DNA of 64,000 nucleotides from Oopsacas minuta (Eukaryota; Animalia; Porifera), in assembly GCA_024704765.1 (NCBI GenBank), contig JAKMXF010000302.1, positions 310,001-374,000 of the forward strand. The letters run 5' to 3'. A program made the position numbers and the translations under genes. The notes below the pieces were generated by a model. That model was given only the letters and a program-made list of their open reading frames with translations. It was not told the origin of the DNA and made no database searches. This document shows, piece by piece, positions 4,424-10,153 of this stretch. Each line of letters starts with the position of its first letter. Positions within the stretch are counted from its first letter, which is position 1.

Positions 4424-7400
4424 TTAGTCTGCATCAGTTTGGTTGGATAAAGTAGTATCACAGTTAGAATAAGAGTCTAAATGGAGGAAAGGTTCTGAAA
4501 GAACGTTAGGTGATTGGGTGACCCTGTGAATGCTAGAAGATGAAAAGAATAGAGGAGGAGGTAGATTAGCAGATGAGATATACTCAGAAGTAGGTAGTTT
4601 AAATTTGTTCGAGGGAGCTGTCATTATACGAGTATTCTTGGTTTTCAGCTGGGAATGAGAGGATTGTAATTGTAATCTTGTTAGATGGTTATTAAGTATT
4701 TTCTGTTCTTGCTCCCACTGCCTTTCCTTAGTCATATACTTGGTCAGCTGTTGTGTATATTGATCGTTTCTATCTTCCAACTCATCGATACGATTCTGAA
4801 AGTTATCCCGTTGTGATTCAAGGTTCTTTAGTTTGATAGAAACTGATTGTTGCTCAAATTTACTTTGTACTACTTCCCCTTTCAATTCTTCATTAGTACG
4901 TTTCAGTTTCGAATTTTCTTCTTTCAACTTTTTGGTTGCATTCTCAAATCTGTCAGTAATAGTTTTAGTCTCTCCTCTCCATTTTGCTCCTAGACGTTGA
5001 TGAGAAGATAACAAGTTTCTGAGCTCATTGGTAGTTTCACGATGACAAGATTCTGTTCCTTCAAATTTAGCTTGTAATTCAGCTTCCTTAGCTCTGAATT
5101 GATTACTCAGAGATTGCAGCTTTTGCATATATTTCCGTTCACAAGTTTCTAAATTAAGATTAGATTCTTTCAAGTTAGTTTTCAACTCTTCAACTTGTCT
5201 GCTGAGTCTCAGCTGATCCTGTTTCTGAGCCTGAATTTGAGAATGAAGTGATTCTTGTCGTTGTTTATTGTTTTGTTTATCTGTTTGTGTGAGTTTCTGT
5301 TCTTGATCCAGCTGTTCTCTCACTTGTAAATAGTCTGAATAAATACCTTCCATTTTGAGTATAGCAGTCTCCCTCTCCAATTCTACACTAGACAGACGTT
5401 GCTGCAACTGATGTATCGCTTCTAAATTCTGAGAAAGATATCCTCTCTTTAATCTCTCCAAATCTTTCTGAGAATTTTGCTTCTCTTTGAGAACTTTTTC
5501 AAATTCCGTCTCTCTCGCTTGGGCCTCATCCTCCAAACTCCTAATTTCACGAGCCATATTAGAAATACTCTGATTACATTCTAGTCTAACTTCATCTACA
5601 CCTTGTTTTGTTTTGTGTCCCACCTCTTCAACAAGTTGTACTAGAGTATCATTCAATCTATCAATTTCTGAATTAGCCTGTTGAGCTTTCATCATTGCTT
5701 GATTCTTCTCAATCATTGCTACTTCTACCATGTCAATACTCTCCTTAACGTGACGAACTGCTTCTTGTTCTCGAGATTCCAAGCTGGCCAATTTACGACT
5801 GTTAGCCATTAAGGAATGCTCGAGTTCAGCTCTTTGTTCTTGTAAAGCCATTATTTCCTTCTTCTGCTCAGATAGTAACATAGCTCTCTGTTGTATGTGA
5901 GATTTCATACGAGATTTTTCCTGTTCAGATTCCAAATCACTCTGTATGTAATTCTCCTTCTCATCTTCAAGAGTTCTAACCCTTTGACTTGCCTATACAA
6001 TGCATAAATAAATTATTCTATTAATAGTACAGATTGTTAATAAATACTTAATCAAAACAGAACCTTACGTAATTCCTGGTGAAATATCTATCAAATTTCT
6101 ATTGATGGAATAGAGATATATATATGAACAGAATAGGATTAGATTTAGTAAATTCAGATAATTCAATACTAATTGTAAGAAGTTATGGCATCATACTTCA
6201 AATCTGCAGCCAGCTCTTATAAGTTCGGAGATCTAACTAAGACAACACTATGGGGATTAAAAGAAGGCGTACACCTATACACGGGAAAGGATGAGTACGA
6301 ATTTGGAGACGTGGCAAGGAAAACTACTAAACATTTGAGTTATCTAGCTGGATTGGTACAAAGTAATCAGAATGAAGATGATCAAGAGGTTTCACAAAGT
6401 GAATTGTCTGAAGAAAATTTGAATACTCCTAACTCACCAGAAGTTATAAATAAATCTAATCCTGAGCCAGTAGAAGACCGTAATAAACTGGTTGATAATC
6501 TGCAAGATGGAACAGCAAGCAATAGCGATGTAATGAACATATTCTCACGAGCTTTTTGGTCTCCCAGAATACAACATACTGTTATATTCACTCCATCAGA
6601 AGAGATTAATCCTGACGTCATATGGGATTCATTCTTTGACAGAGCCTACGAACTAGCTAACCAATGCTTACAATTGACTGTTCTCAACATGGATGATTTC
6701 GTGTGTGAAGAACCATTCTTATACATGGGACTACCATCGCTTATTCTAATCGAGGTCGTGCATCGCTCGCTTGACTGTACAGATGGATTCATTCTATCTA
6801 CTGGTATGAAGCTAACGGGAGATAATTGCCCTGAAAAACACATGTTACTATTCGCATGTATGCAAGCATCAAGAGGAAGACTAAAACTCTTACAACTCAA
6901 CACGAATGAACTGGCAGTGATGAAACTTAGACTTCTATTCGCGGGAGATGATAGTAAAGAGGTACCGTTAGAGCTGACAGAGAGTATAGGTATTGAGAGG
7001 TTGTCGGCTATCAACGCGGTTGTTGCAGAAGTTACGAGTGTTGCTATACATCTTACTCAAGAAGTTATTTTTAAGCAGAAATTCAGAGCAATATTTGAAA
7101 GTATTACGAAGAATGTTTAGTTGTGTATCTATTCCTTAATTTTCCTACTAACGAGTAAATGTGGTAGTTTACTGTGTGGTTATTAAATTATGAGATTTCG
7201 TATTTACCTGTTCAATCAGTTTCTCCAGTTGTGTGTTTTTCAATTTCATCATCCCCAGCTGAGATTTCGCTTCATCAAACTCTCCTTGTAGACTCTCCAA
7301 ATGTTCAGCTTTTCTCTTAAGATATCCAGTAGACTTCTCAGTTTCCATCTCGAGAGTTTCCTTATAGTTCTGCAGTTCAGTGAAGTTCTGTTTCAACACA

Positions 7401-7987
7401 CTTATCTCTTCATTCGTTGTAAAATTTCTAGAGTTAAGCTCCAGCAATCTACTGCTCTGCTCTTGTGAATTTTTCTGTTGTCTTAGTAGTGCATGTTGTG
7501 ACGCTTGCCATTTGTCAAGATAACTATCTCTCTCATGAGTCACAATAGCTATCTGCTGCTTCAAGTTATCTACAAGCTCAGATGAAATTGTTTCTTCAGA
7601 ATTCCCTACATCTTCTATCTGACTGTTATCTCCTATTTGTGACCTCAACGCTTTGTCTAGCTCTTCATAGAGACGTTTGTTCTCATCAGTCAATTCGTGT
7701 ATTTTCTGAGACAAAATCTCCAATTCATTTTGGTAGAAAAGATTATGTTTCTTAAGTTCCTCTATTACCCTGTCGTACTCAACTAGAAGCGGAGCAAGAA
7801 TACCTCTCTTCTCCAACAACAAAGACGCTTCTTTCCCAACTCTAACGGGTACCTCCTCTTGCGAATCAAACTGGATAGGAGAGGGAGTTTCCTTTTGATA
7901 ATGATCTAACTGACTTGACAATCTCTGTACCTGATCCAAAAGGAAGTTCACTTGTGAATCTGTAGCTGTATCAGCTGATTCACTCAT
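4424..7987 (-). CDS. SCLT1: Sodium channel and clathrin linker 1 (centriole distal appendage protein); exons 7987-7208, possible 30-nt exon 6098-6069, and 5992-4424
   Basis: ORF 7169-7987 matches the SCLT1 N-half (QVNFLLDQVQRL, ILAPLLVEYD, DNLKQQIAIVTHERDSYLDKWQ). ORF 4424-5935 matches the C-half (EAVRHVKESIDMVEVA, ELRNLLSSHQRLGAKWRGETK). Phase-0 donor CAG|GTAAAT at 7208/7207 and phase-0 acceptor TAG|GCA at 5993/5992 join the halves in frame. Confidence 0.82.
6185..7120 (+). CDS. Intronless 311-aa uncharacterised protein nested antisense in the SCLT1 intron; N-terminal Y-x-FGD repeats, C-terminal region resembling plant At3g27390-family C-terminal domain
   Basis: Long ORF with ATG and stop entirely inside SCLT1 intron 1. 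Repeats YKFGDLTK and GKDEYEFGDVARK; region WDSFFDRA..MGLPSLILIEVVHRS..GFILS..LLFAGD..FKQKF. The domain similarity is from recall only. Confidence 0.8.
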   Translation: MASYFKSAASSYKFGDLTKTTLWGLKEGVHLYTGKDEYEFGDVARKTTKHLSYLAGLVQSNQNEDDQEVSQSELSEENLNTPNSPEVINKSNPEPVEDRNKLVDNLQDGTASNSDVMNIFSRAFWSPRIQHTVIFTPSEEINPDVIWDSFFDRAYELANQCLQLTVLNMDDFVCEEPFLYMGLPSLILIEVVHRSLDCTDGFILSTGMKLTGDNCPEKHMLLFACMQASRGRLKLLQLNTNELAVMKLRLLFAGDDSKEVPLELTESIGIERLSAINAVVAEVTSVAIHLTQEVIFKQKFRAIFESITKNV

Positions 7988-8162: not shown

Positions 8163-9836
8163 TCAGAGCTTATTAGCTATAAAATTCAGATCAACCTTAT
8201 CTTCCTCGCTTGAGTAGTCCGCCTCTGCCATAAGAAATGGTGACGTATTAGCCTTACCAAATAGGAAATCTTTAAAATCTCCTCTAACAATTGTTAGCAA
8301 CAGAGTTGATGCTAAGATGGAAGGGACAATATACAGCAGAGCTGGTTGCCCCATTTTTGTTACAACACTAATAATGAAAGCCAGGGCCAAACTGACCATG
8401 TAGCTCAATATACAAATAAGATAGGTAAGTTTGAATTTCCTCTCTCTGAGGTTATCGTAGTAGAGACAGTAACTGAGGAATAAACCAGGCAAAGCAACAT
8501 CTCCAAACCCCAAACCTGCGATAAATATCTGCGGAAATTGACAGGCAACTTCCTGAGGTGTTAACGTTAGATGCGGTATAAGGAATAGAAAGGGAATATT
8601 CTCATTATCTGTTGGGGTGTAAGGAACAACTTCTTGTATTGAAAAGTTAGAATTTGACAATCTACTCGAAACATCTGGACCAAAAGCTACATACTCCATG
8701 ATACTACGTCCATCAGTTGTGAATAGCGGAGTTATGAACACAAAAAACACATCGTACACGACTAGAACACATAACAATGGAATAAGAAAGGAAATAGAGC
8801 TTTTGAATTGAAGTATAGATAGCATATATGTGATTAGAAAACATCCCAGAATATCCTGTAGTATCCAAGCATAGTATGATTGTCTACACAAAATCCACCA
8901 TAGCGATAATATTACACTTGTCAGAGATAGTATGAAGAACTTTGGATCTGGTCTGTTCTTTAGGATGGGGAATTCGTTAGCAGGGATACGGCAAGTAATA
9001 TACTTTATTTGAGCTATAAATGGCGAGAATACTGAGTAGATAGCAATAGATGTACTGATGCAGAATATAATCATTGCAATCCAAACAAAATACTCGTAGA
9101 AGAAATATAGTCCTAGTAAGAACGCAATCATAGCTCCAAGCAAGAAAACTATATAGATAAATAAACCGAACTGCTTCTCCTCTTCTTCCTGAGAGAATAT
9201 GACCAAATTGCTCAGATCCACTTCCCCCTTACGTTGCAATAAGCCATACTTCAAGAATTCTATATCACACCCGCCCAATATACTACCTAAAATCAATGGT
9301 ATAAGTGCTATGAAGAAGAGAACAATTTTATTAACGTTTAAAGAAGGAGTGTTCACGAGTTCTATTGAAACAGTAGTATAGTCAGCTGAACTAACCAACT
9401 TAAATGAAGATTTTGGTACGATTATTAAGGGTATTGTATAGTTGTCTATTATGGTACTGTTGAGATTGGGAATTGGGAGAGGATAGGCAGAAGCAACGAG
9501 TAACATACTTGCATTAGCGTTAGCAGCTTGAATAATCTTAGTATCGAATGAACAACTCCCTCTAACGATAAACAATACATTTTCATCTATCAGTCTCATA
9601 CTCTTATTAGCAAGCGTATCACACCCATAAGAACGAAATGAAATAACTTCAACTGGTTCAGGAGAAGGCAACGCACCACTCAATGCTGAGAACTCCCCAC
9701 AAACAGAATTACTCACAACTTCAGCTTCATTTCTTAGAGTAACTGATTCGAACGTTACATAAACAAACTCTCCGTATATTGGATTCAGCAGTGCAAATAG
9801 TGAACAAACCAAGCATATTAAACGGTCATAAAGCAT
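8163..9836 (-). CDS. SPPL2: Signal peptide peptidase-like 2 (GxGD intramembrane aspartyl protease with PA domain), intronless
   Basis: Signal peptide, PA domain (VRGSCSFDTK), catalytic YD (VYDVFFVFITP), LGFGD and QPALLY motifs. First ATG is at 9836. Confidence 0.92.
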   Translation of the reverse strand: MLYDRLICLVCSLFALLNPIYGEFVYVTFESVTLRNEAEVVSNSVCGEFSALSGALPSPEPVEVISFRSYGCDTLANKSMRLIDENVLFIVRGSCSFDTKIIQAANANASMLLVASAYPLPIPNLNSTIIDNYTIPLIIVPKSSFKLVSSADYTTVSIELVNTPSLNVNKIVLFFIALIPLILGSILGGCDIEFLKYGLLQRKGEVDLSNLVIFSQEEEEKQFGLFIYIVFLLGAMIAFLLGLYFFYEYFVWIAMIIFCISTSIAIYSVFSPFIAQIKYITCRIPANEFPILKNRPDPKFFILSLTSVILSLWWILCRQSYYAWILQDILGCFLITYMLSILQFKSSISFLIPLLCVLVVYDVFFVFITPLFTTDGRSIMEYVAFGPDVSSRLSNSNFSIQEVVPYTPTDNENIPFLFLIPHLTLTPQEVACQFPQIFIAGLGFGDVALPGLFLSYCLYYDNLRERKFKLTYLICILSYMVSLALAFIISVVTKMGQPALLYIVPSILASTLLLTIVRGDFKDFLFGKANTSPFLMAEADYSSEEDKVDLNFIANKL

Positions 9837-10153
9837 TGAATCCAAACGAATTTCTTATAAATTTGCTAGGAAAAGAAGAATTCAGAATATTTATATAATA
9901 TTCATGTAACCTTGAAAAGAACTTTCCAATAAACGAACAGCACTATGTGCATATAATGCTACCCTCAAATAGACAATTATGAAGACAAGTAATAATCAGT
10001 GTAATTGAAATTAATATAACATGGAAAACTGATACAGGTGGTTAACTTATACAACATACCAATGACAAATATGTGTTGTCAAGAAAATACATGTAATAAC
10101 ACAAAGAATATTTACATTTCACTCCATAATGAGAAAATATATAAGATATTATA

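Follow-up and report, generated by a model that had tools for sequence, protein, structure and literature searches.

We analysed a 64,000-nt stretch of the genome of the glass sponge Oopsacas minuta (contig JAKMXF010000302.1, positions 310,001 to 374,000; hereafter, the window) and focused on a single-exon gene of the plus strand (6185..7120) that is nested, in antisense orientation, inside the intron of a coiled-coil gene. Our main finding is that the C-terminal domain of the nested protein is kin to the domain with which nuclear receptors (NRs) bind ligands (ligand-binding domain, LBD), a point that the preliminary description of this DNA had missed. The explanation that best fits the data, to which we assign as a whole a probability of about 0.72, is that of an old eukaryotic gene kept by sponges and vertically inherited. 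It encodes two short motifs, a linker and a domain with the LBD fold, and belongs to an unnamed NR-LBD-related family whose members presumably bind lipids.

The nested coding sequence is complete, with an ATG start, 311 codons and a stop, as supported by the list of open reading frames (ORFs), homologues, selection and synteny. An alignment of the sponge nested proteins (A1, the basis of the sponge-only profile) divides the product into three parts: a conserved N-terminal region of ∼58 residues with two motif copies, a variable acidic linker and a strongly conserved C-terminal region of ∼200 residues. Both motif copies, SSYKFGDLTK (residues 10-19; 6212..6241, plus strand) and TGKDEYEFGDVARK (residues 33-46; 6281..6322, plus strand), are conserved in A1 and match tandem repeats present elsewhere. 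The linker (approximately residues 60-105; 6362..6499, plus strand) is rich in insertions and deletions in A1, shows a predicted local distance difference test score (pLDDT) of 24-33 in a full-length model and is probably disordered. The C-terminal domain (C-domain; residues 106-311; 6500..7117, plus strand) is the part predicted to adopt the NR LBD fold, according to an AlphaFold2 model, structural alignments and profiles. It includes Arg194-Ser195 (codons at 6764..6769, plus strand), the most conserved pair of the family in our conservation table (R 92%, S 95%); W147, G182, R194, S195 and P216 are the most conserved residues of the family. Pfam returned no hit for the whole nested protein (E<=1) or for residues 106-311 (E<=10). 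A hydropathy scan found zero membrane segments in the sponge proteins, compared with 6-9 in long family members, and the nested product is a soluble protein of 311 aa.

The relationship with NRs appeared when profiles were compared with all PDB sequences. With the sponge-only profile the 46 best matches were NR LBDs, headed by RXR-beta (E 0.023), and the profile block FLYxGLPSLILIEVVHRSLDCTDGFILSTG aligned with the RXR-beta LBD. A profile built from an 86-member alignment of the family (A2) gave as its best 60 matches only RXR, USP, ERR or ER sequences, with a best E of 2.2e-5 for USP. Removal of every known sponge sequence from the family profile (A5) left a best E of 9.8e-5 and, again, NRs only among the best 60. 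Since the profile devoid of sponges still matches NRs, the signal must come from the family at large, not from some peculiarity of its sponge members. In the hidden Markov model (HMM) alignments, Arg194-Ser195 pairs with the H-R-S of helix 5 in RXR/USP. In published RXR structures, this helix-5 arginine is the residue that holds the carboxylate of the ligand.

The predicted structure pointed in the same direction. The AlphaFold2 model of residues 106-311, obtained with A2 (m2403983f94e8), had a pLDDT of 89.7 and a predicted template modelling score of 0.86. When the model was compared with structure representatives using VIA-align, 36 NR LBD chains aligned over 153-196 residues with Z scores of 10.1-16.3, and the next chain followed at Z 4.8. 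The estrogen receptor ER-alpha matched at Z 16.3 (root mean square deviation, rmsd, 3.1 Å; 193 of 206 residues), RAR/RXR at Z 15.8 and HNF4 at Z 15.3. In addition, the best 50 Foldseek matches were all NR LBDs, and the RXR cluster of the Atlas reached a template modelling (TM) score of 0.76 over 202 residues. Taken together, the profiles and the predicted fold indicate that the family is a distant, sequence-detectable homologue of the NR LBD, and the modelled domain corresponds to the three-layer helical sandwich that defines the LBD fold. The nested protein is nevertheless not a nuclear receptor, because it lacks the zinc-finger DNA-binding domain (DBD): PF00105 gave no Pfam hit at E<=1, and the N-terminal 105 residues consist of the two short motifs and the disordered acidic linker. 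As regards the helix-12 core motif of NRs (activation function 2) and its coactivator charge clamp, a C-terminal amphipathic helix is present (FKQKFRAIFESI), and its Glu varies among orthologues (E/Q/H).

Searching 1.84 billion representatives exhaustively with HMMER and the A1 profile, we retrieved 457 relatives at E<=1e-3, 92 of them at E<=1e-10. Domain mapping placed the C-domain in four contexts: behind a GK(D/E)EYxFGD repeat or several of them, the arrangement of the sponge protein (P0010, P0013, P0016, P0020, P0023, P0033, P0034); behind 6-9 helices predicted to lie in the membrane, the whole proteins being 506-646 aa long (P0046, P0061, P0073-P0078, P0106 and others); as tandem pairs (P0012, P0014, P0019, P0022, P0028); and alone. 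The membrane-anchored members terminate in motifs like ...TEENRP... and ...PTFHRRF..., and five of them (P0046, P0061, P0073, P0077, P0106) match positions ∼135-307 of the A1 profile with E from 1e-10 to 1e-14. The N-terminal motif is also present, repeated 3-7 times in tandem, in dozens of proteins that carry no C-domain (P0035, P0042, P0053 and others); more than 40 of the proteins listed have 3-7 stretches that correspond to profile positions 10-52, with a repeat of ∼20-40 residues, of which the sponge protein has two copies. These repeat proteins come from marine microbial eukaryotes, in line with the earlier association of GKDEYEFGD-type motifs with algal and dinoflagellate proteins. Pfam scans of the repeat proteins and of the membrane-anchored relatives gave nothing significant, and Pfam has no model for the repeat or the domain. 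The few members with a recorded origin include Picozoa (EukProt), TARA surface picoplankton, a EukProt transcriptome and one animal, Oscarella lobularis, and most of the 457 relatives appear to derive from marine metagenomes or transcriptomes. Overall, the family is unnamed, missing from Pfam and widespread in eukaryotes.

That the nested ORF is a real gene, and that its C-domain has the NR LBD fold, we hold with high confidence. A word-indexed protein search detected eight relatives of the nested protein, 58-76% identical and all on large contigs. Pairwise counts among the nested orthologues gave proportions of synonymous differences of 0.66-0.89, that is, saturated synonymous sites, and a non-synonymous divergence of 0.10-0.26 in the C-terminal two thirds of the protein. 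The resulting ratio of non-synonymous to synonymous rates (dN/dS) was 0.04-0.10 where measurable, indicative of strong purifying selection, and was higher in the N-terminal part. Contigs of a relative with ∼95% identity cover the ORFs, and none falls on the non-coding stretches 5951-6204 and 7094-7220 at a 90% threshold. The nested layout is present in eight glass-sponge assemblies (the window, L001, L002, L003, L005, L006, L007 and L012), with the gene order ECM29, a small ORF, host exon 2, the opposite-strand nested gene, host exon 1 and an SPPL2-type peptidase. We reject a spurious ORF on the grounds of selection and synteny. These data, together with the splice sites of the host, uphold the preliminary claims that the gene is real, antisense and nested, and they answer in the affirmative the question, raised there, of whether related sponges carry the same intron and insert. 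It was also said to fill almost the whole of a 1.1 kb intron; the nesting is correct, whereas the size is not, given that the intron has 1215 nt and the nested ORF takes up 77% of it. We conclude that the nested position is an old arrangement kept in glass sponges.

Several details of the locus concern the ends of the nested gene. An ATTAAA located 62 nt past the stop codon (7182..7187, plus strand) could serve as poly(A) signal. Two AG dinucleotides lie 3 and 6 nt ahead of the start codon (gtaAGaAGttATG, window 6170-6187). Spliced-leader trans-splicing has been described in glass sponges (PMC10282587), and an AG before the ATG could act as a spliced-leader acceptor, judging from its position. 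In L001, the nested orthologue has a MASYFKSAASSYKFGDLTK start just upstream of 6001 (plus strand), followed by a one-base frame shift before ...GALKGGVHLYTGKEEYQFGD, as a consequence of which the gene caller started at an internal Met (P0009, 278 aa). This frame shift is either an assembly error or a genuine loss of the first motif. Finally, P0008, an apparent 540-aa fusion that joins the nested protein to host exon 2 and looked like evidence of a same-strand transcript, was discarded as an assembly artefact. It lies on a palindromic fold-back contig of 6.5 kb (L011) with the genes mirrored around ∼3.4 kb, and the same sample shows the normal layout.

Vertical descent is supported by homologues at other loci and in another sponge class. 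Glass sponges have a second, fast-evolving paralogue, ∼40% identical (P0010 and P0015; L004:8001-9017 and L009:8001-8855), found on contigs whose samples also yielded the nested orthologues P0004 and P0005. In two species this paralogue sits in a block composed of a 3-beta-HSD-like gene, small ORFs, the paralogue, a gene with leucine-rich repeats and EGF domains, and a 7tm_2 adhesion-type receptor. The homoscleromorph Oscarella lobularis encodes an orthologue (P0013 = NCBI protein XP_065838384.1) on a chromosome-scale record of 3.2 Mb, where its gene has MMS22L and an hnRNP-Q-like gene as neighbours and is interrupted by five GT..AG introns, each 52-64 nt long. In the maximum-likelihood tree the nested orthologues formed one clade (support of 96 in the Shimodaira-Hasegawa-like approximate likelihood ratio test, SH-aLRT), joined by P0011 (91) and then by the second paralogue (93). 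A tree constrained to a single all-sponge clade including Oscarella was the best tree found, with a likelihood 8.6 units above that of the free search and a P-value of 0.72 in the approximately unbiased test (p-AU). As for P0011, the closest relative outside the nested clade, it lies on a 1.2 kb contig of run SRR2064712 that looks like a transcript and probably comes from another sponge. Its true N-terminus (MASYLTDSLSYF...TGKETYQFGDITKK) was found at L008:14-190 in a different reading frame, the shift being located at eight consecutive A.

Among the alternatives, the one that survives best concerns only the route by which the gene arrived in the intron. According to it, an early glass sponge acquired, by insertion into the host intron, a messenger RNA or DNA copy of the P0010/P0015 paralogue. 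The nested gene is intronless whereas its Oscarella orthologue has five introns, and a paralogue that joins the nested clade does exist elsewhere in the genome. In glass sponges, however, most transcripts are single-exon, and in Aphrocallistes nesting affects ∼12% of the genes, with many such cases conserved (PMC10282587). Because genes of these sponges are commonly single-exon and nested, intronless nesting is no sign of foreign or retro origin and neither trait is diagnostic; the nested, antisense, intronless arrangement is ordinary for such compact genomes. Moreover, as the paralogues are only ∼40% identical, any retro-insertion must be very old. Neither a remnant of a poly(A) tail nor a duplicated target site was seen, although no search was aimed at them. 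We consider this route a minority possibility, and it is compatible with vertical inheritance of an LBD-related gene.

A less probable alternative is that the likeness to NR LBDs reflects convergence of an all-helical fold and that the gene belongs to an unrelated uncharacterised family. Helical folds yield high structural Z scores by chance, identity to NRs is 7-15%, and the HMM match is local. This alternative is hard to reconcile with the fall from Z 16 to the next chain at 4.8, with the coverage of nearly the whole domain in the same helix order, and with three independent profiles, each headed exclusively by NR LBDs (E as low as 2e-5, zero bias). Besides, the G...RS...G..L..G block, the most conserved of the family, aligns residue for residue with the block of RXR/USP that comprises helix 5 and the beta-turn. 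We therefore judge convergence to be quite unlikely.

Horizontal acquisition, in which an alga or other protist would have donated repeats and domain to the glass-sponge lineage with landing in the intron, deserves still less credence. It draws on the presence of the same two-part architecture in microbial eukaryotes (P0016 from EukProt, and the P0034 cluster with a Picozoa member), on the marine origin that most relatives seem to have, and on the lack of a bilaterian orthologue among the named hits. These observations are outweighed by the Oscarella orthologue, which belongs to another sponge class and has spliceosomal introns and animal neighbours, by the two glass-sponge paralogues at separate conserved loci, and by the all-sponge clade of the best tree. 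Base composition and GC content of the nested gene also resemble those of its neighbours and flanks. The synteny of the second paralogue, the Oscarella introns, the tree and the base composition argue against a recent transfer, which we reject; an ancient transfer into the sponge stem lineage is conceivable. The preference of the preliminary description for horizontal transfer or retro-insertion is thus not sustained, on account of the second paralogue, the Oscarella introns, the sponge clade and the frequency of nesting, and of the three options it had raised, an ancient gene lost in most animals provides the best fit. Least credible of all is a true NR that lost its DBD, as in DAX-1/SHP or in receptors of ctenophores, and diverged beyond recognition: the nested protein finds its fold, and its closest matches by sequence to solved structures, in NR2/NR3-type LBDs, and NRs without DBD are known in early-branching animals (PMC3038971), but the nested protein matches its non-NR family at E 1e-20 to 1e-65 against 0.02 for any NR and has no PF00104 hit, and the family still matches NR LBDs when freed of sponges and has members, membrane-anchored or with tandem domains, of kinds not known from NRs.

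Several points weigh against the explanation that we favour, namely a vertically inherited gene of an LBD-related, lipid-binding family. The sequence match with the NR LBD spans only ∼80 residues, from helix 4/5 to helix 8, with 21-27 bits, and PF00104 does not report the nested protein, even when residues 106-311 are scanned at E<=10. The free tree does not resolve the position of the Oscarella sequence. Few family members have a recorded taxon, and other animals may therefore also carry the gene. The sequencing runs that contain the locus are all genomic DNA (Nextera adapter ends, no joints) and none is RNA, so that transcription of the nested gene in Oopsacas minuta is inferred. Ligand, pocket and localisation of the nested protein are likewise inferred.

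With regard to function, the C-domain would enclose a small hydrophobic or amphipathic ligand, whose carboxylate or other polar head might be held by the near-invariant Arg194-Ser195 of helix 5. In this view the protein would sense or carry lipids, either in the cytoplasm or at membranes, rather than serve as a transcription factor. We give this predicted mechanism roughly even odds. Because some relatives are membrane-anchored and because a cluster of LST2, a protein with a FYVE domain, resembles the C-domain in shape, a role at membranes, sensing or carrying lipids, is likelier than a nuclear one.

The host gene is encoded on the minus strand, where two ORFs flank the nested one (7169..7987, 272 aa; 4424..5935, 503 aa). 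Reading of the sequence and frame checks delimited a first coding exon of 260 codons (7208..7987, minus strand), an intron of 1215 nt with GT..AG ends in phase 0 (5993..7207, minus strand) and a second coding exon of 522 codons plus stop (4424..5992, minus strand), both exons encoding coiled coil. Exon 1 ends at 7208 with ...LEKLIEQ followed by a GTAAAT donor, and the frame of exon 2 starts at 5992 (ASQRVRTLEDEKENY..., ASQRV...) preceded by TTGTATAG (TATAG|GCAAGT), with both exon frames remaining open. Three other species (L001-L003) conserve the donor (GTAAGT, GTAATA, GTAAAT), the acceptor (YAG) and the coding sequence as far as that acceptor, as expected of one spliced host gene and not of two separate genes. 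This is the only coding intron seen in the host. Evidence of host identity came from PF15964 (CCCAP) on exon 2 (E 6e-8) and from precomputed hits of PF28159 (CEP89) on the exon 1 ORFs of relatives. Searched separately, the host exons had no PDB relative, and feature and shape searches of the Atlas were uninformative for coiled coil; the SCLT1 cluster of the Atlas, which carries PF28159, was one among many coiled-coil rows (score 0.93). Given this Atlas cluster, the name SCLT1 for the host is plausible, and it could not be verified.

Two observations come from L001, the most divergent species. Its host intron measures ∼3 kb, and a second ORF of 376 aa (L001:7116-8246, minus strand), with no Pfam hit, lies between the nested gene and host exon 1. 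In the window, the host gene is adjoined, as in all species, by a single-ORF gene (8163-9845, minus strand) whose 560-aa product combines a PA domain with a signal peptide peptidase (PF04258, E 1.5e-52) and corresponds to an SPPL2-type intramembrane protease.

NRs have been described as animal-only, and a recent paper states that their evolutionary origins are unknown (PMC8942334). Our literature search found no paper treating a non-animal homologue of the NR LBD, and none linking LST2 to NRs. The NR resemblance has already been noticed by annotation pipelines: 'steroid nuclear receptor' appears as an annotation in PMC6331000 and PMC3928125, where it could not be shown to mean the At3g27390-type plant family. 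A eukaryotic family absent from Pfam, with profile E values of ∼1e-5, a fold Z of 16 and retention in two sponge classes, offers a specific candidate from which the NR LBD may have arisen, or which may be its sister. We tentatively propose, at less than even odds, that it represents such a non-receptor source or sister, an ancient eukaryotic lipid-binding module that is usually membrane-tethered. If so, NRs would have arisen in the stem lineage of animals when one copy fused with a C4 zinc finger, and sponges would have retained the gene in its unfused, ancestral-type form. Our results also provide a first functional hypothesis for the uncharacterised At3g27390-type membrane proteins of plants.

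With respect to these plant proteins, At3g27390 has been described as a transmembrane hypothetical protein of 599 aa (PMC3071773), and the preliminary description had pointed to a resemblance between its C-terminal domain and that of the nested protein. An Atlas shape search with the C-domain model found as closest predicted shape a streptophyte cluster of 567 aa (TM 0.80, rmsd 2.1 Å, 181 residues), which also heads the Atlas structure list, and as second closest another streptophyte cluster of 355 aa (TM 0.76). The signature of the family C-domain, IWxSFF ... EPxLxxGLPxLTxL..RS ... G..L..G...T..N(C/R)P ... FKxxF, matches the motifs given there for the plant family, and those quoted for the sponge protein (WDSFF, GLPSL..HRS, GFILS..NCP, LLFAG and FKQKF) coincide exactly with the best-conserved family columns. 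The protist relatives share the layout reported for At3g27390, a membrane anchor followed by the C-domain. Searches with the membrane-anchored (A3) and tandem-domain-led (A4) alignments returned only known sequences or close kin and no named plant protein, so the plant link rests on architecture, motifs and shape. The proposed likeness therefore holds for conserved columns, layout and shape, whereas a direct plant alignment was not obtained. By these three kinds of evidence the sponge C-domain (∼170-200 aa) appears homologous to the At3g27390-like C-terminal domain. The sponge protein is not a full At3g27390-type member, as it lacks the N-terminal multi-pass membrane domain; it has no membrane helices and carries two GK(D/E)EYxFGD motifs instead.

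Compared with the LBD of NRs (PF00104; RXR/USP, HNF4, RAR, ER/ERR), the sponge domain has the same predicted fold over its whole length, with a local profile match at helix 4/5, the beta-turn and helices 7-8, and with the helix-5 Arg in the same position. It differs in its low identity (7-15%), in the absence of the C4 zinc finger, in a short region between helix 8 and helix 10 (with a 4-residue helix at model positions 157-160) in which helix 9 appears reduced, and in a motif of the activation function 2 (AF-2) type that is not clearly conserved among sponge orthologues. DAX-1/SHP and the NRs of Mnemiopsis, an early-branching animal, likewise have an LBD-type domain without DBD (PMC3038971), and the DAX-1 LBD (3f5c_C) matches the model at Z 10.2. 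These proteins are recognisable as NRs by sequence, whereas the sponge protein is not and has non-NR protist proteins as its nearest kin. A cluster of arthropod homologues of LST2/ZFYVE28 matches the C-domain model with a TM score of 0.60 over 156 residues, a lead at the level of shape, and suggests that LST2 contains a further LBD-like domain tethered to membranes via FYVE. In the same Atlas shape search, a basidiomycete cluster of 405 aa matched the C-domain model with a TM score of 0.65. To judge from their modelled shapes, the basidiomycete and LST2/ZFYVE28 clusters may represent further LBD-like families outside the NRs.

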